Positions 50 through 53,502 of a stretch of 64,000 bases of DNA are shown in pieces (position 1 is the first letter of the stretch; the number at the start of each line of letters is the position of its first letter). The position numbers and the translations under genes were made by a program. This stretch comes from Haliotis cracherodii (Eukaryota): assembly GCF_022045235.1 (NCBI RefSeq), contig NW_027266330.1:31744001-31808000 (forward strand), in the 5' to 3' direction. A model generated the notes under the pieces. That model made no database searches, was not told the origin of the DNA, and saw only the letters and a program-made list of their open reading frames with translations.

Positions 50-671
50 ATGGATCCAGTTCAAGTTGCCATCAAGCTGAGACGACTCCTTATTGCCCAC
101 GACAATGCAGTGAAAGAGATCCTGACATTAGGTAAATATGAACTGTGCTCTTTTTCAGTCCCCTGCAAGCATTGCAATATCGGTATCACACTGAATTTTA
201 GAATTGAACAAAATAAAATGATATTGTTGTGAACACATTTACCGAGATTTCTAATTACCCGTTTTATTGTTTTCAGATACCCAAGTCTACTATCTGATGC
301 GGAAGATGACAGCCAACTCCTCCAACAACTGCATAATCCGAGGTGAACAGCTGATCCAGAGACGATGGGTGCTGGAAGGTGTCAAGGAGATGTTTACCAT
401 CTACAGACAACTCAAGTGGCAAGAGGTGCAAGCCTGTGTAAACGCCATCACCAAAGATGCTTCTGGAGAGAGTGATTCGGAGGCGGACTGGAATGCAGAT
501 ACCTCTTTCAATGACGATGAAGCTTCCTTCACGGAACTCCTGTCCGACAGCTCATATAGTGAGGACGACGAAGACCAGGGAGACCTATACAGCAACGACA
601 GCAGCTACGATATGACGACTCTCAGTCGAGCTTTGTCTGTAGACGACAGTGCACTTCATAGAAACGCCTAA
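50..671 (+). CDS. Array gene copy 1: two exons join(50..131,277..671), 158-aa uncharacterised protein with acidic C-terminus (W99 allele)
   Basis: Kozak-like AAAATGG. Donor TTAG|GTAAAT at 131/132, branch-like CTAAT 251-255, acceptor TTTTATTGTTTTCAG| at 276. The phase-1 join (G+AT=Asp) fuses the 60-aa and 134-aa ORFs in frame. AATAAA at 823-828. Confidence 0.8.
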
Positions 672-911
672 GGGAAATCACAAGTCCCATCCACATCAAC
701 TAGTGCTGCATTTACCTTGTTATTCATTTTTTGTTATTGTACACAAATGTTGCCTGACAGTGTGCAAAGGGCATCCTATTATATTGTAAACCACATTTGT
801 TTGTTGATGAATATGCTGAGGAAATAAATAATGAAGTCGATATTATAATCTTGATCATTTGCTGACACGCTCACGACATCTTGGAGACATCATTCGCATA
901 GAAAGTTTGTG

Positions 912-956
<45 letters not shown>

Positions 957-2199
957 TAATTTGAGATGGTATCTCACAATACCAAGCCTTCCATCATTTT
1001 ACTTGGTTCTGAGTATGGCAATCATTCGAAGATATCGTCCTTAATCTATTCTTTGAAATAGGAAAAGATACAGACTAATCAATTGAAATGAAACACATTA
1101 GGTATTGATGGAGAAGAAGAGATTCCAAGGTAATGGTTGCACCATAACATTAAATACAGTTTGGAGCGTTGCAATTCGTTTGCCCGTATCCATGCCGATC
1201 CTATAGCAAAAGGATTTAGACAGACGAACCACAACCCCATATGATATTCATCTGAGAGAGATATATGCCAGGTTGTATTTCATATTATCAGAGCATTTAA
1301 TTGTTTCTCTTTCTTTTTGCAATGTACATGCCCAAGTGCTTAAGGAGAGAGTCATGCATGTTAAAAAGTGTCAATGCACACAACATGCAAAACAAAAGGA
1401 AATTGAAACATTGACATCAACACAGGCCAAATAACATTTTTGATCCAAGTCAGCACTTGATGAATACTATTCCCCTGAAAGCACTAAAAAGTAAAGATCA
1501 GAATATCCTGACATGAAACAGTGGGATTCTTTCAAAAACAATGCTAACAACGTGCTTATGTTTATCTAGCAACATACTCCAATTTCCATCATGTGCTTTA
1601 ACAGCATTCTGTATTCAAAGATATAAATCATGACACAGTGCTTTGTAATTCTCCCCAAAACATGACAGTTATACACTGAAGATGATGTCTCTAGATCATT
1701 TAACACACATAAACTTTATTGTACATGCCTATTTATTTATATAGTAACCTTTTAAGTACCCGACGTCCACCCAAAAGCTTCTAAGATGGTAAATATCCAG
1801 ATACTTAAGCCAAATGAGCTGCTTCAATTATACCATGATGATGGTATTCATCAAAAATAGTATTTGAAATGCTTCAAAACATACGTGCTGTATTTCGATC
1901 ATGTAAGACGGGTTGGGAAAATGCTCAGATTAACATAGCATTTACGACCTCCAACAGATGTGTACAATAAGTTCCAGATTTGACTGTACATGTATTCACT
2001 TTGCCTTTGCCTACCTGATTAAGGATTTTTTAGGATTGTGGACATGGTTTTCTCGGCTTTTTTAATTGAAACTAAACGTTCAGAGAAGCATGCATCAGAC
2101 GATTTCCAAGCTGATAGAAGTTTCTGTGACTTGGTTTCTGTGGAAGCGAAAGTAACCACATCGGATTTTTAAGTAATACAATGTACTGCACCGTTTGAT

Positions 2200-2495
2200 C
2201 AATCCCGATTTAATCAATTAACAATGATTGATAATCCCTGGAGATAACAGGACTAGATTGGTTGAACTCTTCTCAGACCTGTCCCTTTATACGGAAACTT
2301 GTTTTGACAAGAAGTTGATTGGTTTCTCAAGTGGACAGTGAGATTCCTTTCGGATCAAAGCCGAATGAAGTTGCAGTGTAGCTTTGATCTCGCCACTGGC
2401 TTCGAAAATGCTCTCTTTGATCTATAAATCTCTACTACTATGTTTATACTAAGGGTAAGTATAAATGTTTTGCAAGGACTGGAGTCCTTCACTGC
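2200..2495 (+). promoter_or_regulatory. Putative promoter of the array gene (repeated in every unit)
   Basis: Inverted CCAAT boxes (ATTGG 2257-2261, 2318-2322), TATAAA at 2423 and 2460, and Inr-like TTCACT with its A (2491) 31 nt from the second TATA. Palindrome AAGGACT-GG-AGTCCTT at 2474-2489. Confidence 0.5.
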
Positions 2496-2612
2496 ATCTC
2501 AATCCGTGAAAACGAACACATCTACTTTCCAATTAACTAAATTTGGCGCTACTGAATTCCTGTAGTATTACATCCGACTGCATTCTAGTGTTGTGTCCGA
2601 AGGCCCTAGAAA

Positions 2613-3234
2613 ATGGATCCAGTTCAAGTTGCCATCAAGCTGAGACGACTCCTTATTGCCCACGACAATGCAGTGAAAGAGATCCTGACATTAGGTAAAT
2701 ATGAACTGTGCTCTTTTTCAGTCCCCTGCAAGCATTGCAATATCAGTATCACACTGAATTTTAGAATTGAACAAAATAAAATGATATTGTTGTGAACACA
2801 TTTACCGAGATTTCTAATTACCCGTTTTATTGTTTTCAGATACCCAAGTCTACTATCTGATGCGGAAGATGACAGCCAACTCCTCCAACAACTGCATAAT
2901 CCGAGGTGAACAGCTGATCCAGAGACGATGGGTGCTGGAAGGTGTCAAGGAGATGTTTACCATCTACAGACAACTCAAGTGGCAAGAGGTGCAAGCCTGT
3001 GTAAACGCCATCACCAAAGATGCTTCTGGAGAGAGTGATTCGGAGGCGGACGGGAATGCAGATACCTCTTTCAATGACGATGAAGCTTCCTTCACGGAAC
3101 TCCTGTCCGACAGCTCATATAGTGAGGACGACGAAGACCAGGGAGACCTATACAGCAACGACAGCAGCTACGATATGACGACTCTCAGTCGAGCTTTGTC
3201 TGTAGACGACAGTGCACTTCATAGAAACGCCTAA
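2613..3234 (+). CDS. Array gene copy 2 join(2613..2694,2840..3234), G99 allele
   Basis: Same exon/intron signals as copy 1, ORF intact. Confidence 0.8.
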
Positions 3235-3474
3235 GGGAAATCACAAGTCCCATCCACATCAACTAGTGCTGCATTTACCTTGTTATTCATTTTTTGTTAT
3301 TGTACACAAATGTTGCCTGACAGTGTGCAAAGGGCATCCTATTATATTGTAAACCACATTTGTTTGTTGATGAATATGCTGAGGAAATAAATAATGAAGT
3401 CGATATTATAATCTTGATCATTTGCTGACACGCTCACGACATCTTGAAGACATCATTCGCATAGAAAGTTTGTG

Positions 3475-3517
<43 letters not shown>

Positions 3518-5173
3518 TAATTTGAGATGGTATCTCACAATACCAAGCCTTCCATCATTTTACTTGGTTCTGAGTATGGCAATCATTCGAAGATATCGTC
3601 CTTAATCTATTCTTTGAAATAGGAAAAGATACAGACTAATCAATTGAAATGAAACACATTAGGTATTGATGGAGAAGAAGAGATTCCAAGGTAATGGTTG
3701 CACCATAACATTAAATACAGTTTGGAGCGTTGCAATTCGTTTGCCCGTATCCATGCCGATCCTATAGCAAAAGGATTTAGACAGACGAACCACAACCCCA
3801 TATGATATTCATCTGAGAGAGATATATGCCAGGTTGTATTTCATATTATCAGAGCATTTAATTGTTTCTCTTTCTTTTTGCAATGTACATGCCCAAGTGC
3901 TTAAGGAGAGAGTCATGCATGTTAAAAAGTGTCAATGCACACAACATGCAAAACAAAAGGAAATTGAAACATTGACATCAACACAGGCCAAATAACATTT
4001 TTGATCCAAGTCAGCACTTGATGAATACTATTCCCCTGAAAGCACTAAAAAGTAAAGATCAGAATATCCTGACATGAAACAGTGGGATTCTTTCAAAAAC
4101 AATGCTAACAACGTGCTTATGTTTATCTAGCAACATACTCCAATTTCCATCATGTGCTTTAACAGCATTCTGTATTCAAAGATATAAATCATGACACAGT
4201 GCTTTGTAATTCTCCCCAAAACATGACAGTTATACACTGAAGATGATGTCTCTAGATCATTTAACACACATAAACTTTATTGTACATGCCTATTTATTTA
4301 TATAGTAACCTTTTAAGTACCCGACGTCCACCCAAAAGCTTCTAAGATGGTAAATATCCAGATACTTAAGCCAAATGAGCTGCTTCAATTATACCATGAT
4401 GATGGTATTCATCAAAAATAGTATTTGAAATGCTTCAAAACATACGTGCTGTATTTCGATCATGTAAGACGGGTTGGGAAAATGCTCAGATTAACATAGC
4501 ATTTACGACCTCCAACAGATGTGTACAATAAGTTCCAGATTTGACTGTACATGTATTCACTTTGCCTTTGCCTACCTGATTAAGGATTTTTTAGGATTGT
4601 GGACATGGTTTTCTCGGCTTTTTTAATTGAAACTAAACGTTCAGAGAAGCATGCATCAGACGATTTCCAAGCTGATAGAAGTTTCTGTGACTTGGTTTCT
4701 GTGGAAGCGAAAGTAACCACATCGGATTTTTAAGTAATACAATGTACTGCACCGTTTGATCAATCCCGATTTAATCAATTAACAATGATTGATAATCCCT
4801 GGAGATAACAGGACTAGATTGGTTGAACTCTTCTCAGACCTGTCCCTTTATACGGAAACTTGTTTTGACAAGAAGTTGATTGGTTTCTCAAGTGGACAGT
4901 GAGATTCCTTTCGGATCAAAGCCGAATGAAGTTGCAGTGTAGCTTTGATCTCGCCACTGGCTTCGAAAATGCTCTCTTTGATCTATAAATCTCTACTACT
5001 ATGTTTATACTAAGGGTAAGTATAAATGTTTTGCAAGGACTGGAGTCCTTCACTGCATCTCAATCCGTGAGAACGAACACATCTACTTTCCAATTATCTA
5101 AATTTGGCGCTACTGAATTCCTGTAGTATTACATCCGACTGCATTCTAGTGTTGTGTCCGAAGGCCCTAGAAA

Positions 5174-5795
5174 ATGGATCCAGTTCAAGTTGCCATCAAG
5201 CTGAGACGACTCCTTATTGCCCACGACAATGCAGTGAAAGAGATCCTGACATTAGGTAAATATGAACTGTGCTCTTTTTCAGTCCCCTGCAAGCATTGCA
5301 ATATCGGTATCACACTGAATTTTAGAATTGAACAAAATAAAATGATATTGTTGTGAACACATTTACCGAGATTTCTAATTACCCGTTTTATTGTTTTCAG
5401 ATACCCAAGTCTACTATCTGATGCGGAAGATGACAGCCAACTCCTCCAACAACTGCATAATCCGAGGTGAACAGCTGATCCAGAGACGATGGGTGCTGGA
5501 AGGTGTCAAGGAGATGTTTACCATCTACAGACAACTCAAGTGGCAAGAGGTGCAAGCCTGTGTAAACGCCATCACCAAAGATGCTTCTGGAGAGAGTGAT
5601 TCGGAGGCGGACGGGAATGCAGATACCTCTTTCAATGACGATGAAGCTTCCTTCACGGAACTCCTGTCCGACAGCTCATATAGTGAGGACGACGAAGACC
5701 AGGGAGACCTATACAGCAACGACAGCAGCTACGATATGACGACTCTCAGTCGAGCTTTGTCTGTAGACGACAGTGCACTTCATAGAAACGCCTAA
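5174..5795 (+). CDS. Array gene copy 3 join(5174..5255,5401..5795), G99 allele
   Basis: Same signals as copy 1, ORF intact. Confidence 0.8.
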
Positions 5796-6035
5796 GGGAA
5801 ATCACAAGTCCCATCCACATCAACTAGTGCTGCATTTACCTTGTTATTCATTTTTTGTTATTGTACACAAATGTTGCCTGACAGTGTGCAAAGGGCATCC
5901 TATTATATTGTAAACCACATTTGTTTGTTGATGAATATGCTGAGGAAATAAATAATGAAGTCGATATTATAATCTTGATCATTTGCTGACACGCTCACGA
6001 CATCTTGAAGACATCATTCGCATAGAAAGTTTGTG

Positions 6036-6078
<43 letters not shown>

Positions 6079-7734
6079 TAATTTGAGATGGTATCTCACA
6101 ATACCAAGCCTTCCATCATTTTACTTGGTTCTGAGTATGGCAATCATTCGAAGATATCGTCCTTAATCTATTCTTTGAAATAGGAAAAGATACAGACTAA
6201 TCAATTGAAATGAAACACATTAGGTATTGATGGAGAAGAAGAGATTCCAAGGTAATGGTTGCACCATAACATTAAATACAGTTTGGAGCGTTGCAATTCG
6301 TTTGCCCGTATCCATGCCGATCCTATAGCAAAAGGATTTAGACAGACGAACCACAACCCCATATGATATTCATCTGAGAGAGATATATGCCAGGTTGTAT
6401 TTCATATTATCAGAGCATTTAATTGTTTCTCTTTCTTTTTGCAATGTACATGCCCAAGTGCTTAAGGAGAGAGTCATGCATGTTAAAAAGTGTCAATGCA
6501 CACAACATGCAAAACAAAAGGAAATTGAAACATTGACATCAACACAGGCCAAATAACATTTTTGATCCAAGTCAGCACTTGATGAATACTATTCCCCTGA
6601 AAGCACTAAAAAGTAAAGATCAGAATATCCTGACATGAAACAGTGGGATTCTTTCAAAAACAATGCTAACAACGTGCTTATGTTTATCTAGCAACATACT
6701 CCAATTTCCATCATGTGCTTTAACAGCATTCTGTATTCAAAGATATAAATCATGACACAGTGCTTTGTAATTCTCCCCAAAACATGACAGTTATACACTG
6801 AAGATGATGTCTCTAGATCATTTAACACACATAAACTTTATTGTACATGCCTATTTATTTATATAGTAACCTTTTAAGTACCCGACGTCCACCCAAAAGC
6901 TTCTAAGATGGTAAATATCCAGATACTTAAGCCAAATGAGCTGCTTCAATTATACCATGATGATGGTATTCATCAAAAATAGTATTTGAAATGCTTCAAA
7001 ACATACGTGCTGTATTTCGATCATGTAAGACGGGTTGGGAAAATGCTCAGATTAACATAGCATTTACGACCTCCAACAGATGTGTACAATAAGTTCCAGA
7101 TTTGACTGTACATGTATTCACTTTGCCTTTGCCTACCTGATTAAGGATTTTTTAGGATTGTGGACATGGTTTTCTCGGCTTTTTTAATTGAAACTAAACG
7201 TTCAGAGAAGCATGCATCAGACGATTTCCAAGCTGATAGAAGTTTCTGTGACTTGGTTTCTGTGGAAGCGAAAGTAACCACATCGGATTTTTAAGTAATA
7301 CAATGTACTGCACCGTTTGATCAATCCCGATTTAATCAATTAACAATGATTGATAATCCCTGGAGATAACAGGACTAGATTGGTTGAACTCTTCTCAGAC
7401 CTGTCCCTTTATACGGAAACTTGTTTTGACAAGAAGTTGATTGGTTTCTCAAGTGGACAGTGAGATTCCTTTCGGATCAAAGCCGAATGAAGTTGCAGTG
7501 TAGCTTTGATCTCGCCACTGGCTTCGAAAATGCTCTCTTTGATCTATAAATCTCTACTACTATGTTTATACTAAGGGTAAGTATAAATGTTTTGCAAGGA
7601 CTGGAGTCCTTCACTGCATCTCAATCCGTGAGAACGAACACATCTACTTTCCAATTATCTAAATTTGGCGCTACTGAATTCCTGTAGTATTACATCCGAC
7701 TGCATTCTAGTGTTGTGTCCGAAGGCCCTAGAAA

Positions 7735-8356
7735 ATGGATCCAGTTCAAGTTGCCATCAAGCTGAGACGACTCCTTATTGCCCACGACAATGCAGTGAAA
7801 GAGATCCTGACATTAGGTAAATATGAACTGTGCTCTTTTTCAGTCCCCTGCAAGCATTGCAATATCGGTATCACACTGAATTTTAGAATTGAACAAAATA
7901 AAATGATATTGTTGTGAACACATTTACCGAGATTTCTAATTACCCGTTTTATTGTTTTCAGATACCCAAGTCTACTATCTGATGCGGAAGATGACAGCCA
8001 ACTCCTCCAACAACTGCATAATCCGAGGTGAACAGCTGATCCAGAGACGATGGGTGCTGGAAGGTGTCAAGGAGATGTTTACCATCTACAGACAACTCAA
8101 GTGGCAAGAGGTGCAAGCCTGTGTAAACGCCATCACCAAAGATGCTTCTGGAGAGAGTGATTCGGAGGCGGACTGGAATGCAGATACCTCTTTCAATGAC
8201 GATGAAGCTTCCTTCACGGAACTCCTGTCCGACAGCTCATATAGTGAGGACGACGAAGACCAGGGAGACCTATACAGCAACGACAGCAGCTACGATATGA
8301 CGACTCTCAGTCGAGCTTTGTCTGTAGACGACAGTGCACTTCATAGAAACGCCTAA
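7735..8356 (+). CDS. Array gene copy 4 join(7735..7816,7962..8356), W99 allele
   Basis: Same signals as copy 1, ORF intact. Confidence 0.8.
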
Positions 8357-8596
8357 GGGAAATCACAAGTCCCATCCACATCAACTAGTGCTGCATTTAC
8401 CTTGTTATTCATTTTTTGTTATTGTACACAAATGTTGCCTGACAGTGTGCAAAGGGCATCCTATTATATTGTAAACCACATTTGTTTGTTGATGAATATG
8501 CTGAGGAAATAAATAATGAAGTCGATATTATAATCTTGATCATTTGCTGACACGCTCACGACATCTTGAAGACATCATTCGCATAGAAAGTTTGTG

Positions 8597-8641
<45 letters not shown>

Positions 8642-10297
8642 TAATTTGAGATGGTATCTCACAATACCAAGCCTTCCATCATTTTACTTGGTTCTGAGTA
8701 TGGCAATCATTCGAAGATATCGTCCTTAATCTATTCTTTGAAATAGGAAAAGATACAGACTAATCAATTGAAATGAAACACATTAGGTATTGATGGAGAA
8801 GAAGAGATTCCAAGGTAATGGTTGCACCATAACATTAAATACAGTTTGGAGCGTTGCAATTCGTTTGCCCGTATCCATGCCGATCCTATAGCAAAAGGAT
8901 TTAGACAGACGAACCACAACCCCATATGATATTCATCTGAGAGAGATATATGCCAGGTTGTATTTCATATTATCAGAGCATTTAATTGTTTCTCTTTCTT
9001 TTTGCAATGTACATGCCCAAGTGCTTAAGGAGAGAGTCATGCATGTTAAAAAGTGTCAATGCACACAACATGCAAAACAAAAGGAAATTGAAACATTGAC
9101 ATCAACACAGGCCAAATAACATTTTTGATCCAAGTCAGCACTTGATGAATACTATTCCCCTGAAAGCACTAAAAAGTAAAGATCAGAATATCCTGACATG
9201 AAACAGTGGGATTCTTTCAAAAACAATGCTAACAACGTGCTTATGTTTATCTAGCAACATACTCCAATTTCCATCATGTGCTTTAACAGCATTCTGTATT
9301 CAAAGATATAAATCATGACACAGTGCTTTGTAATTCTCCCCAAAACATGACAGTTATACACTGAAGATGATGTCTCTAGATCATTTAACACACATAAACT
9401 TTATTGTACATGCCTATTTATTTATATAGTAACCTTTTAAGTACCCGACGTCCACCCAAAAGCTTCTAAGATGGTAAATATCCAGATACTTAAGCCAAAT
9501 GAGCTGCTTCAATTATACCATGATGATGGTATTCATCAAAAATAGTATTTGAAATGCTTCAAAACATACGTGCTGTATTTCGATCATGTAAGACGGGTTG
9601 GGAAAATGCTCAGATTAACATAGCATTTACGACCTCCAACAGATGTGTACAATAAGTTCCAGATTTGACTGTACATGTATTCACTTTGCCTTTGCCTACC
9701 TGATTAAGGATTTTTTAGGATTGTGGACATGGTTTTCTCGGCTTTTTTAATTGAAACTAAACGTTCAGAGAAGCATGCATCAGACGATTTCCAAGCTGAT
9801 AGAAGTTTCTGTGACTTGGTTTCTGTGGAAGCGAAAGTAACCACATCGGATTTTTAAGTAATACAATGTACTGCACCGTTTGATCAATCCCGATTTAATC
9901 AATTAACAATGATTGATAATCCCTGGAGATAACAGGACTAGATTGGTTGAACTCTTCTCAGACCTGTCCCTTTATACGGAAACTTGTTTTGACAAGAAGT
10001 TGATTGGTTTCTCAAGTGGACAGTGAGATTCCTTTCGGATCAAAGCCGAATGAAGTTGCAGTGTAGCTTTGATCTCGCCACTGGCTTCGAAAATGCTCTC
10101 TTTGATCTATAAATCTCTACTACTATGTTTATACTAAGGGTAAGTATAAATGTTTTGCAAGGACTGGAGTCCTTCACTGCATCTCAATCCGTGAAAACGA
10201 ACACATCTACTTTCCAATTAACTAAATTTGGCGCTACTGAATTCCTGTAGTATTACATCCGACTGCATTCTAGTGTTGTGTCCGAAGGCCCTAGAAA

Positions 10298-10919
10298 ATG
10301 GATCCAGTTCAAGTTGCCATCAAGCTGAGACGACTCCTTATTGCCCACGACAATGCAGTGAAAGAGATCCTGACATTAGGTAAATATGAACTGTGCTCTT
10401 TTTCAGTCCCCTGCAAGCATTGCAATATCAGTATCACACTGAATTTTAGAATTGAACAAAATAAAATGATATTGTTGTGAACACATTTACCGAGATTTCT
10501 AATTACCCGTTTTATTGTTTTCAGATACCCAAGTCTACTATCTGATGCGGAAGATGACAGCCAACTCCTCCAACAACTGCATAATCCGAGGTGAACAGCT
10601 GATCCAGAGACGATGGGTGCTGGAAGGTGTCAAGGAGATGTTTACCATCTACAGACAACTCAAGTGGCAAGAGGTGCAAGCCTGTGTAAACGCCATCACC
10701 AAAGATGCTTCTGGAGAGAGTGATTCGGAGGCGGACGGGAATGCAGATACCTCTTTCAATGACGATGAAGCTTCCTTCACGGAACTCCTGTCCGACAGCT
10801 CATATAGTGAGGACGACGAAGACCAGGGAGACCTATACAGCAACGACAGCAGCTACGATATGACGACTCTCAGTCGAGCTTTGTCTGTAGACGACAGTGC
10901 ACTTCATAGAAACGCCTAA
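10298..10919 (+). CDS. Array gene copy 5 join(10298..10379,10525..10919), G99 allele
   Basis: Same signals as copy 1, ORF intact. Confidence 0.8.
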
Positions 10920-11161
10920 GGGAAATCACAAGTCCCATCCACATCAACTAGTGCTGCATTTACCTTGTTATTCATTTTTTGTTATTGTACACAAATGTTG
11001 CCTGACAGTGTGCAAAGGGCATCCTATTATATTGTAAACCACATTTGTTTGTTGATGAATATGCTGAGGAAATAAATAATGAAGTCGATATTATAATCTT
11101 GATCATTTGCTGACACGCTCACGACATCTTGAAGACATCATTCGCATAGAAAGTTTGTGTA

Positions 11162-11202
<41 letters not shown>

Positions 11203-12855
11203 TAATTTGAGATGGTATCTCACAATACCAAGCCTTCCATCATTTTACTTGGTTCTGAGTATGGCAATCATTCGAAGATATCGTCCTTAATCTATTCTTT
11301 GAAATAGGAAAAGATACAGACTAATCAATTGAAATGAAACACATTAGGTATTGATGGAGAAGAAGAGATTCCAAGGTAATGGTTGCACCATAACATTAAA
11401 TACAGTTTGGAGCGTTGCAATTCGTTTGCCCGTATCCATGCCGATCCTATAGCAAAAGGATTTAGACAGACGAACCACAACCCCATATGATATTCATCTG
11501 AGAGAGATATATGCCAGGTTGTATTTCATATTATCAGAGCATTTAATTGTTTCTCTTTCTTTTTGCAATGTACATGCCCAAGTGCTTAAGGAGAGAGTCA
11601 TGCATGTTAAAAAGTGTCAATGCACACAGCATGCAAAACAAAAGGAAATTGAAACATTGACATCAACACAGGCCAAATAACATTTTTGATCCAAGTCAGC
11701 ACTTGATGAATACTATTCCCCTGAAAGCACTAAAAAGTAAAGATCAGAATATCCTGACATGAAACAGTGGGCATCTTTCAAAAACAATGCTAACAACGTG
11801 CTTATGTTTATCTAGCAACATACTCCAATTTCCATCATGTGCTTTAACAGCATTCTGTATTCAAAGATATAAATCATGACACAGTGCTTTGTAATTCTCC
11901 CCCAAAACATGACAGTTATACACTGAAGATGATGTCTCTAGATCATTTAACACACATAAACTTTATTGTACATGCCTATTTATTTATATAGTAACCTTTT
12001 AAGTACCCGACGTCCACCCAAAAGCTTCTAAGATGGTAAATATCCAGATACTTAAGCCAAATGAGCTGCTTCAATTATACCATGATGATGGTATTCATCA
12101 AAAATAGTATTTGAAATGCTTCAAAACATACGTGCTGTATTTCGATCATGTAAGACTGGTTGGGAAAATGCTCAGATTAACATAGCATTTACGACCTCCA
12201 ACAGATGTGTACAATAAGTTCCAGATTTGACTGTACATGTATTCACTTTGCCTTTGCCTACCTGATTAAGGATTTTTTAGGATTGTGGACATGGTTTTCT
12301 CGGCTTTTTTTATTGAAACTAAACGTTCAGAGAAGCATCAGGCGATTTCCAAGCTGATAGAAGTTACTGTGACTTGGTTTCTGTGGAAGCGACAGTAACC
12401 ACATCGGATTTTTAAGTAATACAATGTACTGCACCGTTTGATCAATCCCGATTTAATCAATTAACAATGATTGATAATCCCTGGAGATAACAGGACTAGA
12501 TTGGTTGAACTCTTCTCAGACCTGTCCCTTTATACGGAAACTTGTTTTGACAAGAAGTTGATTGGTTTCTCAAGTGGACAGTGAGATTCCTTTCGGATCA
12601 AAGCCGAATGAAGTTGCAGTGTAGCTTTGATCTCGCCACTGGCTTCGAAAATGCTCTCTTTGATCTATAAATCTCTACTACTATGTTTATACTAAGGGTA
12701 AGTATAAATGTTTTGCACGGACTGGAGTCCTTCACTGCATCTCAATCCGTGAGAACGAACACATCTACTTTCCAATTATCTAAATTTGGCGCTACTGAAT
12801 TCCTGTAGTATTACATCCGACTGCATTCTAGTGTTGTGTCCGAAGGCCCTAGAAA

Positions 12856-13477
12856 ATGGATCCAGTTCAAGTTGCCATCAAGCTGAGACGACTCCTTATT
12901 GCCCACGACAATGCAGTGAAAGAGATCCTGACATTAGGTAAATATGAACTGTGCTCTTTTTCAGTCCCCTGCAAACATGGCAATATCGGTATCACACTGA
13001 ATTTTAGAATTGAACAAAATAAAATGATATTGTTGTGAACACATTTACCGAGATTTCTAATTACCCGTTTTATTGTTTTCAGATACCCAAGTCTACTATC
13101 TGATGCGGAAGATGACAGCCAACTCCTCCAACAACTGCATAATCCGAGGTGAACAGCTGATCCAGAGACGATGGGTGCTGGAAGGTGTCAAGGAGATGTT
13201 TACCATCTACAGACAACTCAAGTGGCAAGAGGTGCAAGCCTGTGTAAACGCCATCACCAAAGATGCTTCTGGAGAGAGTGACTCGGAGGCGGACTGGAAT
13301 GCAGATACCTCTTTCAATGACGATGAAGCTTCCTTCACGGAACTCCTGTCCGACAGCTCATATAGTGAGGACGACGAAGACCAGGGAGACCTATACAGCA
13401 ACGACAGCAGCTACGATATGACGACTCTCAGTCGAGCTTTGTCTGTAGACGACAGTGCACTTCATAGAAACGCCTAA
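12856..13477 (+). CDS. Array gene copy 6 join(12856..12937,13083..13477), W99 allele
   Basis: Same signals; one synonymous GAT>GAC change. Confidence 0.8.
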
Positions 13478-15271
13478 GGGAAATCACAAGTCCCATCCAC
13501 ATCAACTAGTGCTGCATTTACCTTGTTATTCATTTTTTGTTATTGTACACAAATGTTGCCTGACAGTGTGCAAAGGGCATCCTATTATATTGTAAACCAC
13601 ATTTGTTTGTTGATGAATATGCTGAGGAAATAAATAATGAAGTCGATATTATAATCTTGATCATTTGCTGACACGCTCACGACATCTTGAAGACATCATT
13701 CGCATAGAAAGTTTGTGAGAGACAGAGAGAGAGAGAGAGAGAAAAGGTTAATTTGAGATGGTATCTCACAATACCAAGCCTTCCATCATTTTACTTGGTT
13801 CTGAGTATGGCAATCATTCGAAGATATCGTCCTTAATCTATTCTTTGAAATAGGAAAAGATACAGACTAATCAATTGAAATGAAACACATTAGGTATTGA
13901 TGGAGAAGAAGAGATTCCAAGGTAATGGTTGCACCATAACATTAAATACAGTTTGGAGCGTTGCAATTCGTTTGCCCGTATCCATGCCGATCCTATAGCA
14001 AAAGGATTTAGACAGACGAACCACAACCCCATATGATATTCATCTGAGAGGATATATGCCAGGTTGTATTTCATATTATCAGAGCATTTAATTGTTTCTC
14101 TTTCTTTTTGCAATGTACATGCCCAAGTGCTTAAGGAGAGAGTCATGCATGTTAAAAAGTGTCAATGCACACAGCATGCAAAACAAAAGGAAATTGAAAC
14201 ATTGACATCAACACAGGCCAAATAACATTTTTGATCCAAGTCAGCACTTGATGAATACTATTCCCCTGAAAGCACTAAAAAGTAAAGATCAGAATATCCT
14301 GACATGAAACAGTGGGCATCTTTCAAAAACAATGCTAACAACGTGCTTATGTTTATCTAGCAACATACTCCAATTTCCATCATGTGCTTTAACAGCATTC
14401 TGTATTCAAAGATATAAATCATGACACAGTGCTTTGTAATTCTCCCCAAAACATGACAGTTATACACTGAAGATGATGTCTCTAGATCATTTAACACACA
14501 TAAACTTTATTGTACATGCCTATTTATTTATATAGTAACCTTTTAAGTACCCGACGTCCACCCAAAAGCTTCTAAGATGGTAAATATCCAGATACTTAAG
14601 CCAAATGAGCTGCTTCAATTATACCATGATGATGGTATTCATCAAAAATAGTATTTGAAATGCTTCAAAACATACGTGCTGTATTTCGATCATGTAAGAC
14701 GGGTTGGGAAAATGCTCAGATTAACATAGCATTTACGACCTCCAACAGATGTGTACAATAAGTTCCAGATTTGACTGTACATGTATTCACTTTGCCTTTG
14801 CCTACCTGATTAAGGATTTTTTAGGATTGTGGACATGGTTTTCTCGGCTTTTTTAATTGAAACTAAACGTTCAGAGAAGCATGCATCAGACGATTTCCAA
14901 GCTGATAGAAGTTTCTGTGACTTGGTTTCTGTGGAAGCGAAAGTAACCACATCGGATTTTTAAGTAATACAATGTACTGCACCGTTTGATCAATCCCGAT
15001 TTAATCAATTAACAATGATTGATAATCCCTGGAGATAACAGGACTAGATTGGTTGAACTCTTCTCAGACCTGTCCCTTTATACGGAAACTTGTTTTGACA
15101 AGAAGTTGATTGGTTTCTCAAGTGGACAGTGAGATTCCTTTCGGATCAAAGCCGAATGAAGTTGCAGTGTAGCTTTGATCTCGCCACTGGCTTCGAAAAT
15201 GCTCTCTTTGATCTATAAATCTCTACTACTATGTTTATACTAAGGGTAAGTATAAATGTTTTGCAAGGACT

Positions 15272-16186
15272 ACAAGCCCTCCAAAACAAAAATACCAAAA
15301 ACCGACCTAAATTAATAAATCAAATACTTAAAAGCTCCAACGACCTAACAAAAGCAGGCAAACAAATAACCTTCTTGTGGATACCCGCCCACGTAGGAAT
15401 ATACGGTAATGAAAACGCCGATAAAGCAGCTAAACTATCCCTTAAAATCCCAGAAATAAGCTTAAACTTACCCATCTCAAAATCAGAAATTAAAAGTGTA
15501 AACAAACAAAAAATCACAAAAAAATGGCATAACCTATATCTAAACTCAAATAGCAAAATCAAAAGAGTGCTCAGCAAACCACTAACCAAACCAAAAATTC
15601 TCCATCCATCAAAAAAAATCGACAGAGTAATCACTAAACTCCAAACAGGACACACCAACCTAAATAACCACCTAAAAAAAATTAAAAAACACACTACAGG
15701 TAACTGCCCACACTGCAAACAACCAGAAACCCCAGAACACGCACTCATCCACTGCACACACTACCTAACACATCGAACCGCATTACAAACCACCCTCAAT
15801 CTAAACAAGGCTCTCACTCTAGAAGCAATACTAAACCCACAAAATAAACTAGAAAACTTCAAGGCCTTAGGCGTATTCTTAATAAAAACGGAACTAATAA
15901 AACGCATCTAAAACCATAATAACCTACCAAATCAAAATCACATAAACAAACAATCATCCACCATACCCAGCTCCCTTAGTTCTCCTCCCCAACCCCATCA
16001 GCATCTATTCCAAATCTCAAAATTCCCAAATTCTATATAAGCAACCCCTAAAGCCCCCTCTTGGGTTGCACAGACCACCCTCGCCCCTTTCGGAAACACA
16101 TTAAATGGCCTGGCCGGGCCCGTGTGCGAAATACGCATCAGTCGGAAAGCGCACGTTAAATCTCCAAAGTAAGTAAGTAAGTAAGT
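15272..16186 (+). mobile_element. 5'-truncated non-LTR retrotransposon (I group, Nimb-like), insertion 1
   Basis: Encodes the end of RNase H (WIPAHVGIYGNENADKAAK) and a CCHC finger (CPHCKQPETPEHALIHC), stop at 15911. 3' UTR and (AAGT)5 tail at 16167-16186. 5' junction via GGACT microhomology; no TSD beyond at most one T. Confidence 0.93.
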
Positions 16187-16318
16187 GGAGTCCTTCACTG
16201 CATCTCAATCCGTGAGAACGAACACATCTACTTTCCAATTATCTAAATTTGGCGCTACTGAATTCCTGTAGTATTACATCCGACTGCATTCTAGTGTTGT
16301 GTCCGAAGGCCCTAGAAA

Positions 16319-16940
16319 ATGGATCCAGTTCAAGTTGCCATCAAGCTGAGACGACTCCTTATTGCCCACGACAATGCAGTGAAAGAGATCCTGACATTAG
16401 GTAAATATGAACTGTGCTCTTTTTCAGTCCCCTGCAAGCATTGCAATATCGGTATCACACTGAATTTTAGAATTGAACAAAATAAAATGATATTGTTGTG
16501 AACACATTTACCGAGATTTCTAATTACCCGTTTTATTGTTTTCAGATACCCAAGTCTACTATCTGATGCGGAAGATGACAGCCAACTCCTCCAACAACTG
16601 CATAATCCGAGGTGAACAGCTGATCCAGAGACGATGGGTGCTGGAAGGTGTCAAGGAGATGTTTACCATCTACAGACAACTCAAGTGGCAAGAGGTGCAA
16701 GCCTGTGTAAACGCCATCACCAAAGATGCTTCTGGAGAGAGTGATTCGGAGGCGGACTGGAATGCAGATACCTCTTTCAATGACGATGAAGCTTCCTTCA
16801 CGGAACTCCTGTCCGACAGCTCATATAGTGAGGACGACGAAGACCAGGGAGACCTATACAGCAACGACAGCAGCTACGATATGACGACTCTCAGTCGAGC
16901 TTTGTCTGTAGACGACAGTGCACTTCATAGAAACGCCTAA
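16319..16940 (+). CDS. Array gene copy 7 join(16319..16400,16546..16940), W99 allele; upstream region interrupted by LINE insertion 1
   Basis: ORF intact; 915-bp LINE fragment ends 132 bp upstream of the ATG. Confidence 0.75.
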
Positions 16941-17180
16941 GGGAAATCACAAGTCCCATCCACATCAACTAGTGCTGCATTTACCTTGTTATTCATTTTT
17001 TGTTATTGTACACAAATGTTGCCTGACAGTGTGCAAAGGGCATCCTATTATATTGTAAACCACATTTGTTTGTTGATGAATATGCTGAGGAAATAAATAA
17101 TGAAGTCGATATTATAATCTTGATCATTTGCTGACACGCTCACGACATCTTGAAGACATCATTCGCATAGAAAGTTTGTG

Positions 17181-17223
<43 letters not shown>

Positions 17224-18768
17224 TAATTTGAGATGGTATCTCACAATACCAAGCCTTCCATCATTTTACTTGGTTCTGAGTATGGCAATCATTCGAAGAT
17301 ATCGTCCTTAATCTATTCTTTGAAATAGGAAAAGATACAGACTAATCAATTGAAATGAAACACATTAGGTATTGATGGAGAAGAAGAGATTCCAAGGTAA
17401 TGGTTGCACCATAACATTAAATACAGTTTGGAGCGTTGCAATTCGTTTGCCCGTATCCATGCCGATCCTATAGCAAAAGGATTTAGACAGACGAACCACA
17501 ACCCCATATGATATTCATCTGAGAGAGATATATGCCAGGTTGTATTTCATATTATCAGAGCATTTAATTGTTTCTCTTTCTTTTTGCAATGTACATGCCC
17601 AAGTGCTTAAGGAGAGAGTCATGCATGTTAAAAAGTGTCAATGCACACAACATGCAAAACAAAAGGAAATTGAAACATTGACATCAACACAGGCCAAATA
17701 ACATTTTTGATCCAAGTCAGCACTTGATGAATACTATTCCCCTGAAAGCACTAAAAAGTAAAGATCAGAATATCCTGACATGAAACAGTGGGATTCTTTC
17801 AAAAACAATGCTAACAACGTGCTTATGTTTATCTAGCAACATACTCCAATTTCCATCATGTGCTTTAACAGCATTCTGTATTCAAAGATATAAATCATGA
17901 CACAGTGCTTTGTAATTCTCCCCAAAACATGACAGTTATACACTGAAGATGATGTCTCTAGATCATTTAACACACATAAACTTCATTGTACATGCCTATT
18001 TATTTATATAGTAACCTTTTAAGTACCCGACGTCCACCCAAAAGCTTCTAAGATGGTAAATATCCAGATACTTAAGCCAAATGAGCTGCTTCAATTATAC
18101 CATGATGATGGTATTCATCAAAAATAGTATTTGAAATGCTTCAAAACATACGTGCTGTATTTCGATCATGTAAGACGGGTTGGGAAAATGCTCAGATTAA
18201 CATAGCATTTACGACCTCCAACAGATGTGTACAATAAGTTCCAGATTTGACTGTACATGTATTCACTTTGCCTTTGCCTACCTGATTAAGGATTTTTTAG
18301 GATTGTGGACATGGTTTTCTCGGCTTTTTTAATTGAAACTAAACGTTCAGAGAAGCATGCATCAGACGATTTCCAAGCTGATAGAAGTTTCTGTGACTTG
18401 GTTTCTGTGGAAGCGAAAGTAACCACATCGGATTTTTAAGTAATACAATGTACTGCACCGTTTGATCAATCCCGATTTAATCAATTAACAATGATTGATA
18501 ATCCCTGGAGATAACAGGACTAGATTGGTTGAACTCTTCTCAGACCTGTCCCTTTATACGGAAACTTGTTTTGACAAGAAGTTGATCGGTTTCTCAAGTG
18601 GACAGTGAGATTCCTTTCGGATCAAAGCCGAATGAAGTTGCAGTGTAGCTTTGATCTCGCCACTGGCTTCGAAAATGCTCTCTTTGATCTATAAATCTCT
18701 ACTACTATGTTTATACTAAGGGTAAGTATAAATGTTTTGCAAGGACTGGAGTCCTTCACTGCATCTCA

Positions 18769-20764
18769 TACTTACTTACTTTGGAGATTTAACGTGCGCT
18801 TTCCGACTGACGCGTATTTCGCACACGGGCCCGGCCAGGCCATTTAATGTGTTTCCGAAAGGGGCGAGGGTGGTCTGTGCAACCCAAGAGGGGGCTTTAG
18901 GGGTTGCTTATATAGAATTTGGGAATTTTGAGATTTGGAATAGATGCCGATGGGGTTGGGGAGGAGAACTAAGGGAGCTGGGTATGGTGGATGATTGTTT
19001 GTTTTTGTGATTTTGATTTGGTAGGTTATCATGGTTTTAGATGCGTTTTATTAGTTCCGTTTTTATTAAGAATACGCCTAAGGCCTTGAAGTTTTCTAGT
19101 TTATTTTGTGGGTTTAGTATTGCTTCTAGAGTGAGAGCCTTGTTTAGATTGAGGGTGGTTTGTAATGCGGTTCGATGTGTTAGGTAGTGTGTGCAGTGGA
19201 TGAGTGCGTGTTCTGGGGTTTCTGGTTGTTTGCAGTGTGGGCAGTTACCTGTAGTGTGTTTTTTAATTTTTTTTAGGTGGTTATTTAGGTTGGTGTGTCC
19301 TGTTTGGAGTTTAGTGATTACTCTGTCGATTTTTTTGGATGGATGGAGAATTTTTGGTTTGGTTAGTGGTTTGCTGAGCACTCTTTTGATTTGGCTATTT
19401 GAGTTTAGATATAGGTTATGCCATTTTTTTGTGATTTTTTGTTTGTTTACACTTTTAATTTCTGATTTTGAGATGGGTAAGTTTAAGCTTATTTCTGGGA
19501 TTTTGAGGGATAGTTTAGCTGCTTTATCGGCGTTTTCATTACCGTATATTCCTACGTGGGCGGGTATCCACAAGAAGGTTATTTGTTTGCCTGCTTTTGT
19601 TAGGTCGTTGGAGCTTTTTAGTATTTGATTTATTAATTTAGGTCGGTTTTTGGTATTTTTGTTTTGGAGGGCTTGTAGTCCACTTAGGGAGTCAGTAAGT
19701 ATTAGGATTTTTTGGTTGTTTTTGGATTCTTGATTGTGGAGGGCTGAGGCCATGCCCATTAGTTCGGCCGTGAATATTGATTGGTTATTTGGGAGTCGGA
19801 AGGATTGTGTGGTTTTAGTTGGTTGTGTGGTATGGACTCCGAAACCCGTGTGTTTGGAGGTCGGATCTGAGGATCCGTCCGTGTAAATGTGACACCAATT
19901 TGGCCAATTTTTGTGTATGTATGCTAGTGTGGTAGTTTTAGCTATGTTTGGGTCGGTTTGTTTATTTATTTGGCTAGCTAGTGTTGTGTCTATTTTGGGT
20001 ATTTTAAGTTTAGGGGTGAAGATATTTGATTGTTTGCAGTTTTGTTTAAGATTTTTAATTTGGTGTTCATTTAGGTAGTTTGTTATTCTTTGGGATATTG
20101 GGGTAAGTAAGGGGTGTTTACGAGCTAGAGCTTGGTTTTTAGGGCTGATGTTTTGGTTTATTAAGTTTTGGATGAGAGGGTTTGATTGGGACGCGGCCCA
20201 GAAATTTAAGCTTAGCTGTTCCCTGCGTAGACTTAGTGGCATTTCTCCTGTTAAGGCCTGAAGTGAGGTGTAGGAGGTGCCATGTTGGGTGCGTGTAATG
20301 AGTTTGAGAGCCTGATATTGTATTGAGTCAAGTTTTTTAGATAGAGAGTTGTTTAGGGTGTTGTATATGGCGCAGCCGTAGTCTAGTTTTGATCTAATTA
20401 GGGATATGTAGAGAGAGAGGAGAGTATCTTTGGAGGATCCCCAGTTAGAGCCAGTTAGGCATCTTAGGGTGTTTAGGTCTTTACTGCATTTAGTTGTTAG
20501 GTTTTGGATGTGAGCATCCCAGGTGAGATGTTCATCGAAAATAAGTCCTAAGAATTTGGTTTGTTTTTGAAATTTGATTGTTTGATTGTTTAGCTGGAGG
20601 ATTGGGGAGGCGGGTTTCATGTTTTTATGTTTGAATACTATTCCTGTTGTTTTTTCTGAGTTAAGGGAGAAGCCCCATTTGTCAGCCCATTGTTGTATTT
20701 TATTAAGAGATTTTTGGAGTAGATTTTTGGCCATTTTCATGCTAAGTAAGTAAGTAAGTAAGTA
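18769..20764 (-). mobile_element. 5'-truncated non-LTR retrotransposon of the same family, insertion 2, antisense, 22-bp TSD
   Basis: TSD TGGAGTCCTTCACTGCATCTCA at 18747-18768 and 20765-20786. Minus-strand tail TACTTACTTACT at 18769-18780 and an extra plus-strand (TAAG)n run at 20743-20764. Confidence 0.95.
19037..20740 (-). pseudogene. Truncated LINE ORF2: C-terminal part of RT, RNase H, CCHC zinc finger (567 aa open)
   Basis: QWADKWGF..KFLGLIFD (distal RT/thumb), IRSKLDYG, RNase H motifs IYTDGS, FTAEL, TDSLS, WIPAHVGIYGNENAD, then CX2CX7HX4C. Begins downstream of the YADD motif, so it is not a full protein. Confidence 0.92.
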
Positions 20765-20897
20765 TGGAGTCCTTCACTGCATCTCAATCCGTGAGAACGA
20801 ACACATCTACTTTCCAATTATCTAAATTTGGCGCTACTGAATTCCTGTAGTATTACATCCGACTGCATTCTAGTGTTGTGTCCGAAGGCCCTAGAAA

Positions 20898-21519
20898 ATG
20901 GATCCAGTTCAAGTTGCCATCAAGCTGAGACGACTCCTTATTGCCCACGACAATGCAGTGAAAGAGATCCTGACATTAGGTAAATATGAACTGTGCTCTT
21001 TTTCAGTCCCCTGCAAGCATTGCAATATCAGTATCACACTGAATTTTAGAATTGAACAAAATAAAATGATATTGTTGTGAACACATTTACCGAGATTTCT
21101 AATTACCCGTTTTATTGTTTTCAGATACCCAAGTCTACTATCTGATGCGGAAGATGACAGCCAACTCCTCCAACAACTGCATAATCCGAGGTGAACAGCT
21201 GATCCAGAGACGATGGGTGCTGGAAGGTGTCAAGGAGATGTTTACCATCTACAGACAACTCAAGTGGCAAGAGGTGCAAGCCTGTGTAAACGCCATCACC
21301 AAAGATGCTTCTGGAGAGAGTGATTCGGAGGCGGACGGGAATGCAGATACCTCTTTCAATGACGATGAAGCTTCCTTCACGGAACTCTTGTCCGACAGCT
21401 CATATAGTGAGGACGACGAAGACCAGGGAGACCTATACAGCAACGACAGCAGCTACGATATGACGACTCTCAGTCGAGCTTTGTCTGTAGACGACAGTGC
21501 ACTTCATAGAAACGCCTAA
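20898..21519 (+). CDS. Array gene copy 8 join(20898..20979,21125..21519), G99 allele; upstream region interrupted by LINE insertion 2
   Basis: ORF intact; one synonymous CTG>TTG change. Confidence 0.75.
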
Positions 21520-24500
21520 GGGAAATCACAAGTCCCATCCACATCAACTAGTGCTGCATTTACCTTGTTATTCATTTTTTGTTATTGTACACAAATGTTG
21601 CCTGACAGTGTGCAAAGGGCATCCTATTATATTGTAAACCACATTTGTTTGTTGATGAATATGCTGAGGAAATAAATAATGAAGTCGATATTATAATCTT
21701 GATCATTTGCTGACACGCTCACGACATCTTGAAGACATCATTCGCATAGAAAGTTTGTGAGAGACAGAGAGAGAGAGAGAGAGAAAAGGTTAATTTGAGA
21801 TGGTATCTCACAATACCAAGCCTTCCATCATTTTACTTGGTTCTGAGTATGGCAATCATTCGAAGATATCGTCCTTAATCTATTCTTTGAAATAGGAAAA
21901 GATACAGACTAATCAATTGAAATGAAACACATTAGGTATTGATGGAGAAGAAGAGATTCCAAGGTAATGGTTGCACCATAACATTAAATACAGTTTGGAG
22001 CGTTGCAATTCGTTTGCCCGTATCCATGCCGATCCTATAGCAAAAGGATTTAGACAGACGAACCACAACCCCATATGATATTCATCTGAGAGGATATATG
22101 CCAGGTTGTATTTCATATTATCAGAGCATTTAATTGTTTCTCTTTCTTTTTGCAATGTACATGCCCAAGTGCTTAAGGAGAGAGTCATGCATGTTAAAAA
22201 GTGTCAATGCACACAGCATGCAAAACAAAAGGAAATTGAAACATTGACATCAACACAGGCCAAATAACATTTTTGATCCAAGTCAGCACTTGATGAATAC
22301 TATTCCCCTGAAAGCACTAAAAAGTAAAGATCAGAATATCCTGACATGAAACAGTGGGCATCTTTCAAAAACAATGCTAACAACGTGCTTATGTTTATCT
22401 AGCAACATACTCCAATTTCCATCATGTGCTTAAGATATAAATCATGACACAGTGCTTTGTAATTCTCCCCAAAACATGACAGTTATACACTGAAGATGAT
22501 GTCTCTAGATCATTTAACACACATAAACTTTATTGTGCATGCCTATTTTTTATTCATATAGTACCTGAAGTCCACCCAAAAGCTTCTAAGATGGTAAATA
22601 TCCAGATACTTAAGCCAAAATGAGCTGCTTCAATTATACCATGATGATGGTATTCATAAAACATAGTATTTGTAATAGGAAAAAGATACAGACTAATCAA
22701 TTGAAATGAAACACATTTTGACATTATGTATTGGTGGAGAAGAAGAGATTCCCATGTTTCATTTAATCCGAGCATTCAATTGTTTCTTGTAAATGAACAA
22801 ACGAACAAAATCGCACCTTTTGGCATTTGGTGTTAGGAAAAGGTGTTATGCTACTCCAAGTATAGTATAGTTTCGATTATGGCCAGTTCAGTCATTTCTG
22901 TTCGAAATTTAATGAAATTTGATATGCTATAAAAGCATATTGTTTCGAAGTTTCGTGTTATCCGAGGTTCGACATAACTGAAACTGATAAATAAAGAAGC
23001 AATACGCATGATTTTACTTGGTACAACGGTATGTTAGACACAACAGTGTTTTTGACAGGTACGTGTCGTTGGTGGAACGAGTGAATAAGTGAGTGAGTGA
23101 ATTTTGAACAGTATTCTTGTTACACCATGGCGTGTCAGCTGAATGCGGAGGTAAAGCCTAAAGTGGTGCAAGTTCCAGACCATAATCGGGGCAAACCGGA
23201 ATTCGAACCCACGATCATAGATTTCTGCCAATCAGTCGTTGTTTTATCCCCCTAATGCGAAGCCCCAGACAGGGTAACAACAAGTACCATCTTTTAACGT
23301 CTTTTGGTATGATGCGGACGGGGATCGAACCCCGGACCTACCGCTCTCTGGACGGACACTCTACCACTAGACCACGTTTGCAGTCTGTCTGAACATGAAT
23401 ATGTTTGCAGCGATGTAAGCGAGATCAGGCTTTTCCAATTGTACGCAGAAATTTATCAAAAGATCATATATATTAGTGGTCGGTCATTTATTATATGGTC
23501 AAAGGAAATCAGTGGAAGATCACCAAAAAATATGACAGTCTCTTGGGGAGGGTTATAAAACAATACACATACTTGGTGAGGGTCATGAAAAGTGCACATT
23601 TTATAATACAATATAAAATGCTTTTGCATTTTGTCTTTTGGGGAGGGTAATGAAACAAATGTACAAGGCCATGGGCATGGTCTTCCGAAAATATGACGAG
23701 CATTAGGTGATGGTGGGTTGAAATGGCATTTAACATCGCGTCCAAGATTATTGCACTTTATGTAGCGACGTGCATGCATGTGTGTGTGGCTGCTTGTACT
23801 AGTCCGGACTGGTGCTGATTTATAGTGCTAGCACACTTAGATACCATGCCGCAGTTTAACATGAATACCCCACTCAGACACAGCATACTGACTCCACGCC
23901 GACCAGTCGTTTTAGTTTGTTTGTTTGTTTGTTTTTAACGCTGCACTCAGAAATATTCCAGCTATATGACAGCGGTCTGTAAATAATCGAGTCTGGACCA
24001 GACAATCCAGTGATTGACATGATGAGCATCGATCCACGCAATTTGGATACGATGACATGCAGCAACCAAGTCAGCGAGCCTCACCACCCGATCCCATTAG
24101 TCGCCCCTTACGACAAGCATAGTTGCCTTTTACGCCAAACATGGGTTGCTGAAGACCTATTCTACACCAGATGTTTAGCCCCTTAATGCGGAGTGCCAGA
24201 CAGGGAAACAACAAGTACCATCTTTAAATGTCTTTTTGTATGACACGCCCGGGAATTGAACCCCGGACCTCCCGTTCTCCGGGCTGACGCTCTACCACAA
24301 GACTATGGTGGCGGTCTTGAGCATTAGGGGAGGGTCTCCATTTTCTGTGCATCAAAAACATCTGACCCTCTGTAATAAATGACCAGTCCCTTTGGCAAGA
24401 CAAATAAAACACATAAAACAACAATGATGTTGAAGCTGATGTTTTATTCTTTGGCTCATTGACTGTAAAATGTCTCCCAAATTCTACCTGCACAGAGTTA

Positions 24501-53346: not shown

Positions 53347-53502
53347 NNNNNNNNNNNNNNNNNNNNNNNNNNNNNNNNNNNNNNNNNNNNNNNNNNNNNN
53401 NNNNNNNNNNNNNNNNNNNNNNNNNNNNNNNNNNNNNNNNNNNNNNNNNNNNNNNNNNNNNNNNNNNNNNNNNNNNNNNNNNNNNNNNNNNNNNNNNNNN
53501 NN
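53347..53502. other. Assembly gap
   Basis: Run of N. Confidence 1.

Follow-up and report, generated by a model that had tools for sequence, protein, structure and literature searches.

The question raised by this locus of the black abalone, Haliotis cracherodii, is whether the tandem repeats at the beginning of the 64-kb stretch analysed here (the window, C67:31,744,001-31,808,000) carry a functional gene, and what its amplification may serve. The 142 kb upstream of the window were included in the analysis, except for 31,622,001-31,624,000. The answer held to be probable is that a real, annotated but uncharacterised two-exon gene is present in an array of 47 copies, the amplification serving the dosage of an intracellular protein of adaptor type.

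Each copy of the gene has an 82-nt exon, a 145-nt GT..AG intron in phase 1 and a 395-nt exon, and encodes a product of 158 amino acids (aa). In copy 1 (50..671, plus strand, ATG to stop) exon 1 is found at 50-131, the intron at 132-276 (GTAAAT..TTTCAG), where it splits the GAT codon of Asp28, and exon 2 at 277-671. The unspliced open reading frames (ORFs) of this copy comprise 60 aa at 50..232 and 134 aa at 267..671. The initial annotation had joined these two ORFs across the intron, and the same junction is found in the annotations of four Haliotis species and in one public contig, with the same position and phase in distant paralogues. The spliced 158-aa gene model is correct.

The window contains eight copies, all on the plus strand and all intact, as had been reported; the ATG is at the first position of each interval given here. 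Copy 2 (2613..3234; exon 1 2613-2694, intron 2695-2839, exon 2 2840-3234), copy 3 (5174..5795), copy 5 (10298..10919) and copy 8 (20898..21519) carry the substitution W99G, and copy 8 also has the synonymous change L116L. Copy 6 (12856..13477) has the synonymous change D94D, and copy 4 (7735..8356) and copy 7 (16319..16940) complete the set. No other coding differences were found among the eight copies, in agreement with the initial annotation, and W99G is thus present in 4 of 8. The same annotation had described the gene as hidden, but RefSeq already annotates these genes: copies 1, 4, 6 and 7 translate exactly to the RefSeq-derived P0085 (XP_071085741 and others), an "uncharacterized protein".

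An AATAAA is located about 150 nt past each stop codon, as had been noted for every copy (823..828, plus strand, in copy 1; same offset at 3386, 5947, 8508, 11071, 13629, 17092 and 21671 in the others). A TATA-containing region had also been claimed upstream of every copy. This is true of copies 2-6, where two TATAAA boxes are found 150-190 nt ahead of the ATG, but not of copies 7 and 8, where a fragment of a long interspersed nuclear element (LINE) separates the boxes from the ATG; for copy 1 this region falls outside the window. In copy 2 the two TATAAA(T) boxes (2423..2466, plus strand) are at 2423-2429 and 2460-2466. No upstream ATG occurs in the 146 nt between 2467 and the start codon, compared with seven in the preceding 466 nt, and the start context AAAATGG is a good one. 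Transcription of copy 2 is inferred to start at about 2490.

Expression was looked for in Logan contigs of four runs (X1, X2, X5 and X11) matching window positions 2001-4500, the RNA nature of these runs being a guess. A 58-nt contig of run X5 joins 2692 to 2838 (GT..AG, cut +2), which is the exact joint of exon 1 and exon 2 of copy 2. This spliced contig has a depth of 16.8, and the unspliced path one of 12.8. At 2694, the last base of exon 1, contigs of X5 and X11 break off, and they have their 3' ends at 3392 and 3383, at the AATAAA. Splicing is taken as shown because of the X5 junction, the 5' leader with its start context and the independent gene models with the same junction in four species. 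In X5 there is also a coverage gap from 3393 to 3925, and a 1,174-nt contig that begins with 42 unmatched GC-rich letters at 3926 spans about 1.2 kb upstream of the ATG.

The eight copies in the window are only the end of a much larger structure. The head-to-tail array extends over about 160 kb (C67:31,606,785-31,766,752) and has 47 copies of a 2,563-bp unit that bear the coding sequence (CDS); the window holds the last eight units and the distal end. Units 1-7 of the window are 99.1-100% identical, and unit 8 is 96.8% identical and truncated at 22676. The remainder of this last unit (21520..22752, plus strand), cut at unit position ~1821 (window 22676) and followed by an 84-bp degenerate piece, forms the distal end of the array. 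Over the whole array the identity to the window unit is 94.6-97.4% in proximal blocks and 99-100% in distal blocks. A genome search found unit sequence outside the array only as a 109-112-bp piece of exon 2 and a 62-bp match. One lone exon 2 piece of 109 bp, 92% identical and covering residues ~78-117, is located on another chromosome (C23:3,349,749-3,349,857), with the rest of the unit absent.

The features that characterise a macrosatellite are all found here: kb-sized head-to-tail units, at least about 10 copies, high identity and a complete open gene in each unit. The claim that the gene has been amplified as a macrosatellite is therefore confirmed, with the extent corrected from eight copies to 47. 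In terms of its architectural class, the locus is a protein-coding macrosatellite under concerted evolution.

Protein-coding macrosatellites and tandem arrays of mammals include D4Z4-DUX4, TSPY, RS447-USP17 and those of the CT47/GAGE type. The abalone locus resembles these in having kb-sized head-to-tail units in tens of copies, each with a complete gene, promoter and poly(A) signal, and also in being homogenised within species and diverged between species while individual copies tolerate damage. It differs in that the protein has no sequence or domain relation to the mammalian ones (homeobox, NAP/SET, USP) and in that the host is a mollusc and the unit contains no retrogene but a gene of two exons whose intron is ancient. 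The resemblance to D4Z4/DUX4 or TSPY arrays that had been proposed thus holds for the architecture of the locus but does not extend to homology with DUX or TSPY/NAP, for which Pfam gave no match.

Alignment of the copies shows that the reading frame is maintained throughout the array. Among the 46 of 47 copies that could be aligned in full, 45 are open, all 46 have GT..AG intron borders and there are no insertions or deletions in the 477 coding nt. The only exception to the open frame is R57* at C67:31,626,469, outside the window. In the 35 uninterrupted full-length units there are 2.4-2.5 segregating sites per 100 bp of CDS and 4.2-5.3 per 100 bp of spacer, and the CDS has no indels compared with 12 indel runs in the non-coding part (~2.1 kb).

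A search with exon 2 (279-668) retrieved 158-aa "uncharacterized proteins" of H. rufescens (98% identity) and H. asinina (88%), and records of H. cracherodii and H. rubra were added through cluster look-ups. The 25 distinct proteins from the four Haliotis species are all exactly 158 aa long without any frameshift. In this comparison, made at the protein level, the mean number of amino acid differences within species is 1-3. Between species there are 1-5 differences for H. cracherodii and H. rufescens and 8-16 for H. asinina and H. rubra; the North Pacific and the Indo-Pacific clade differ by 16-24. Runs of accession numbers suggest about 26-28 annotated copies in H. cracherodii and likewise in H. 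asinina. At the level of these proteins, copies that are alike within species and diverged between them show that a many-copy gene evolves in concert in each species. All four Haliotis species with data have the array, or at least many copies of the gene.

The array is interrupted by LINE sequence in seven units, always in the same place (unit ~2431-2452) and over 0.9-11.6 kb each. Two of these insertions are in the window and have opposite orientations. The first (15272..16185, plus strand) is a 914-bp 5'-truncated fragment of a non-long terminal repeat (non-LTR) retrotransposon, with the RNase H or C-terminal ORF part, inserted at unit ~2431. The second (18769..20764, minus strand) is a 1,996-bp fragment at the same unit site with a 567-aa ORF for the C-terminus of the reverse transcriptase (RT) and RNase H, and it is flanked by a duplication of about 21 bp of unit positions ~2431-2452. 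Both separate the TATA boxes from the ATG, so that the promoter regions of copies 7 and 8 are displaced. The insertions upstream of the window are located at C67:31,619,967-31,626,336, 31,644,641-31,652,433, 31,687,479-31,691,243, 31,701,473-31,707,801 and 31,714,386-31,726,006. The non-LTR retrotransposon looks site-specific for the array. In the window its target site is the palindrome GGACTGGAGTCC, immediately 3' of the second TATAAAT. The sole copy with a premature stop (R57*, CGA>TGA) is one of the seven LINE-interrupted copies; a stop in a copy cut by a LINE fits decay after silencing, as a single case.

In the explanation preferred here, the copies of a species stay 97-100% alike through unequal crossing-over and gene conversion as the species diverge, and the amplification would serve gene dosage, that is, a very high output in some tissue or stage. 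Several observations weigh against this explanation. The coding variants of the array (46 copies) are 12 non-synonymous, one of them nonsense, and 5 synonymous, which gives an omega of ~0.75, so that purifying selection on single copies is weak or absent. The promoter is separated from the ATG by a LINE in 7 of 47 copies. The evidence for transcription is thin. Contigs of X1 and X2 cover nearly the whole unit including intron and intergenic DNA, with no spliced branch, and have the appearance of genomic DNA or of read-through without splicing. In X5 the exons and the DNA ahead of the TATA boxes are covered equally deeply, which suggests either a far longer 5' leader or transcripts that read through, or else a difference between species. 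Finally, the dosage argument is inferred from the architecture and the conservation only.

The main rival explanation is an amplification without function, in which a satellite-like expansion has carried a small gene along and unequal exchange maintains the array, most copies being silent or redundant. The high omega and the nonsense copy agree with it, as do the repeated LINE insertions at the 5' end of seven copies and the difference in identity between proximal and distal blocks of units, as is found in neutral arrays. It is nevertheless considered unlikely. The gene is many-copy in four species that differ at 16-24 of 158 residues and it has kept its exact length in all 25 sequences; moreover, the CDS of 46 copies is free of indels and less diverse than the spacer.

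Stronger constraint is seen when the gene is compared with its relatives. A profile of nine sequences, run with hmmsearch against 1.84 billion representatives, found 69 proteins at E<1e-3, of which 16 reach E<1e-10. The members that carry a name all come from molluscs (gastropods or bivalves) and are called "uncharacterized" or "hypothetical". The taxa are Haliotis, Lottia, Patella, Pecten, Mizuhopecten, Dreissena, Mya, Mytilus, Potamilus, oysters and Pinctada; examples are H. cracherodii XP_071106524 (on C12), Magallana gigas LOC105345479, Pecten maximus LOC117328993 and Lottia gigantea LOTGIDRAFT_230035. One Mya model is fused to ankyrin repeats. A literature search with locus identifiers of family members and on Haliotis gene arrays found nothing on the array gene or its family. 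The family is unnamed and unstudied, and its known members have so far come only from molluscs.

The members share a common layout. Helix 1 has the pattern L..LL..HD.A..QI..LD and helix 2 the pattern R+..EG[VI]+.MY..YR..KW.QVQ; these are followed by a linker that varies and by a C-terminal helix in which the Arg three residues from the C-terminus is almost invariant. In alignments of 9, 25 and 73 members, K74 and R156 are invariant or at least 90% conserved. The linker of the array gene and of its close relatives (the paralogue at C23:70,788 kb, P0007, P0008 and P0010) is much longer than in the rest of the family, and more acidic. Several family-typical cysteines have also been lost from the array protein (W59, S152), and no other member was seen in an array of such size and identity.

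In the black abalone the paralogues are 25-57% identical to the array protein. The closest one, at C23:70,788 kb (57% identity), has the same acceptor site and a Q/H-rich insert, and there are single hits on C78 and C45. The helical domain of the array protein and of this paralogue differ with a proportion of synonymous differences (pS) of 0.70 and of non-synonymous differences (pN) of 0.285, giving a dN/dS of 0.17. The paralogues on C12 have a phase-1 intron at the homologous Asp, with donor G/GT and acceptor AG/AT. These form two clusters (62,098,120-62,139,817 and 3,439,208-3,468,563) of about 8-10 diverged paralogues in alternating orientation, whose products are 153-aa RefSeq proteins such as XP_071106524. 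The family tends to local duplication in abalone. One further paralogue, at C12:63,483,117-63,483,500 (like P0005, 200 aa), is intronless and continuous across the position of the phase-1 intron; it is a retrogene or a case of intron loss.

These relatives bear on the possibility that the unit is not a gene at all, and is instead either part of a transposon or virus or a satellite without coding function in which an ORF arose by chance. Apart from the repetitive nature of the locus and the LINE fragments within it, nothing speaks for this, and its probability is practically negligible. The paralogues are conserved and share the intron position, the closest of them shows the low dN/dS given above, homologues occur in bivalves and in other gastropods, with single-copy loci in other molluscs, and copies of the unit are not scattered over the genome. 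The RT and RNase H ORFs belong to the LINE pieces, which were inserted secondarily and in 7 units only. Rfam gave no family on window 1-23000, and a scan of viral contigs with the nine-member alignment gave no relative.

The protein can be divided into a basic antiparallel two-helix hairpin (residues 3-90), an acidic Ser-rich linker (~91-135) and a C-terminal helix ending in hydrophobic-x-Arg-x-x. AlphaFold2 with the 73-member alignment predicts the two helices of the hairpin, 3-44 and 47-90, with confidence (predicted local distance difference test, pLDDT, 90-98), disorder at 95-135 and a helix at 136-154 (pLDDT 60-69). The isoelectric point (pI) is 9.3 for the hairpin and 4.05 for the linker, which contains 8 S/T-x-x-D/E (CK2-type) sites; its 47 residues include 17 D/E, 12 S/T and 8 F/Y/W/L. 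The division into a basic hairpin and an acidic part is also found in 6 of 7 other family members checked. The 158-aa product has no signal peptide and is predicted to be intracellular.

The earlier statement that no domain is recognisable holds for Pfam, which gave no consistent family at E<=10 for exon 1, exon 2, the full database proteins, five paralogue ORFs or the 73 members. A sequence-profile search of PDB gave nothing below E 0.29, the ESM Atlas gave no usable match with the database protein P0001, and Foldseek against PDB gave no match at E<=0.001 (E ~0.2 for the hairpins found). The wide VIA-align search returned a flat list of generic helical hairpins (ING3/4/5, IpaB, prefoldin, ESCRT-III and SMC arms) with Z 9.5-11.1, a level that is uninformative for long helices according to the tool's own caution. 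The ING-family hairpin was the best or near-best structural match (Z 11.1 over 91 residues, root mean square deviation 3.0), and the template modelling (TM) scores of ING proteins in Foldseek were 0.49-0.75. Like the N-terminal dimerisation domain of ING3, ING4 and ING5, the modelled hairpin could dimerise into a four-helix coiled coil. The abalone protein differs from the ING family in having no PHD finger and no sequence match, with an identity of 7-10%, and the likeness is limited to a very common arrangement.

One of the listed structures deserves separate treatment. The protein could be a divergent, shortened ESCRT-III (Snf7/CHMP)-like protein, with a hairpin, an autoinhibitory acidic tail and a helix of MIT-interacting type, acting in membrane remodelling or with VPS4. 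As in ESCRT-III/Snf7 (PF03357), a basic antiparallel hairpin of ~90 residues precedes an acidic C-terminal part with a short helix at its end, and most members of the family combine a basic hairpin with an acidic C-terminus. The best structural matches include ESCRT-III hairpins, and a language-model search with the oyster member P0111 gave only Snf7/CHMP6 clusters (0.92, 193/256 features), although 4-10% of shuffled proteins reach 0.9 in this atlas according to the tool's warning. The reading is nevertheless very doubtful. The family proteins have 110-160 aa compared with 200-240 aa in ESCRT-III, and hidden Markov model (HMM) similarity is found in neither direction: Pfam Snf7 is unmatched (best E 1.2, in 3 of 73 members), PF03357 picks out canonical CHMP exons in a genome scan but no family loci, and the unfiltered family HMM gives only a trivial 17-residue match to those CHMP loci. 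The superposition on CHMP4B/Snf7 (Z 10-10.7) equals that on the unrelated hairpins of ING3, IpaB, prefoldin and SMC, and the helices alpha3 and alpha4 are not predicted. Membership of ESCRT-III is thus not supported by Pfam, the genome scan or the reverse HMM search; a functional analogy is possible.

The initial annotation had read the acidic and aromatic tail as a transcriptional activation domain or a histone-chaperone tail of a germline or early-embryo factor. The composition and low pI of the linker would suit such a function, and the architecture of the array is like that of DUX4/TSPY-type loci. However, the Pfam search found no DNA-binding, NAP/SET or nucleoplasmin domain, and the long acidic linker evolves fastest. 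Among the four Haliotis species the linker varies at 22 of 47 columns, the hairpin at 12 of 88 and the C-terminal part at 5 of 23. The long form is specific to the abalone subfamily, most family members having a linker of 20-30 aa instead. What had been described as a tail reaching the C-terminus is moreover not of one kind, since the last ~20 residues are the C-terminal helix conserved across the family. A germline or early-embryo factor of this type is accordingly regarded as very unlikely.

In the preferred explanation, that of a gene amplified for dosage, the product is most likely a putative binding or oligomerising adaptor of coiled-coil type. The acidic and probably phosphorylated linker and the C-terminal helix may regulate the basic hairpin, or dock onto it or onto a partner. 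A more far-reaching version would make the locus the abalone counterpart of the DUX4 and TSPY loci, namely a lineage-restricted and dosage-amplified regulator of a burst (gametogenesis, egg or cleavage) that has been many-copy since the Haliotis ancestor and whose protein would found a new intracellular family, restricted to molluscs as far as seen, with a logic like that of ESCRT-III. The basic oligomerising hairpin would then be restrained by the acidic, CK2-phosphorylated tail and the C-terminal docking helix. This version is quite unlikely.

Beyond the array the window has runs of N at 48937-49084 and 53347-53502, and a 21-bp minisatellite, CTCACTCACTCACCCACCACT, with about 125 copies at 30142-32775 and a GC skew of -0.94. 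The minisatellite gives rise to a spurious ORF of 769 aa with much His, Ser, Leu and Thr. The next gene after the array is represented by exon-like ORFs of a flavin-containing monooxygenase at ~37313-52909 on the minus strand. Its pieces include a monooxygenase-like one at 37313-37711 and one with the FAD-binding motif GAGISGL at 52496-52909.

Large intact protein-coding arrays other than those of the histones have rarely been described in molluscs. The present one is clean, with 47 copies over 160 kb in a chromosome-level assembly, is common to at least four abalone species and is a textbook example of concerted evolution. With the genes already in RefSeq, the finding is useful to specialists without being startling. 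It provides a case of the erosion of a gene array by an apparently site-specific LINE, and it draws attention to an unstudied family of small proteins with a confident predicted fold and clear motifs. With an omega of ~0.75 between the copies of the array and of 0.17 between paralogues, the locus also lends itself to the question of how selection may act on total dosage while single copies drift.

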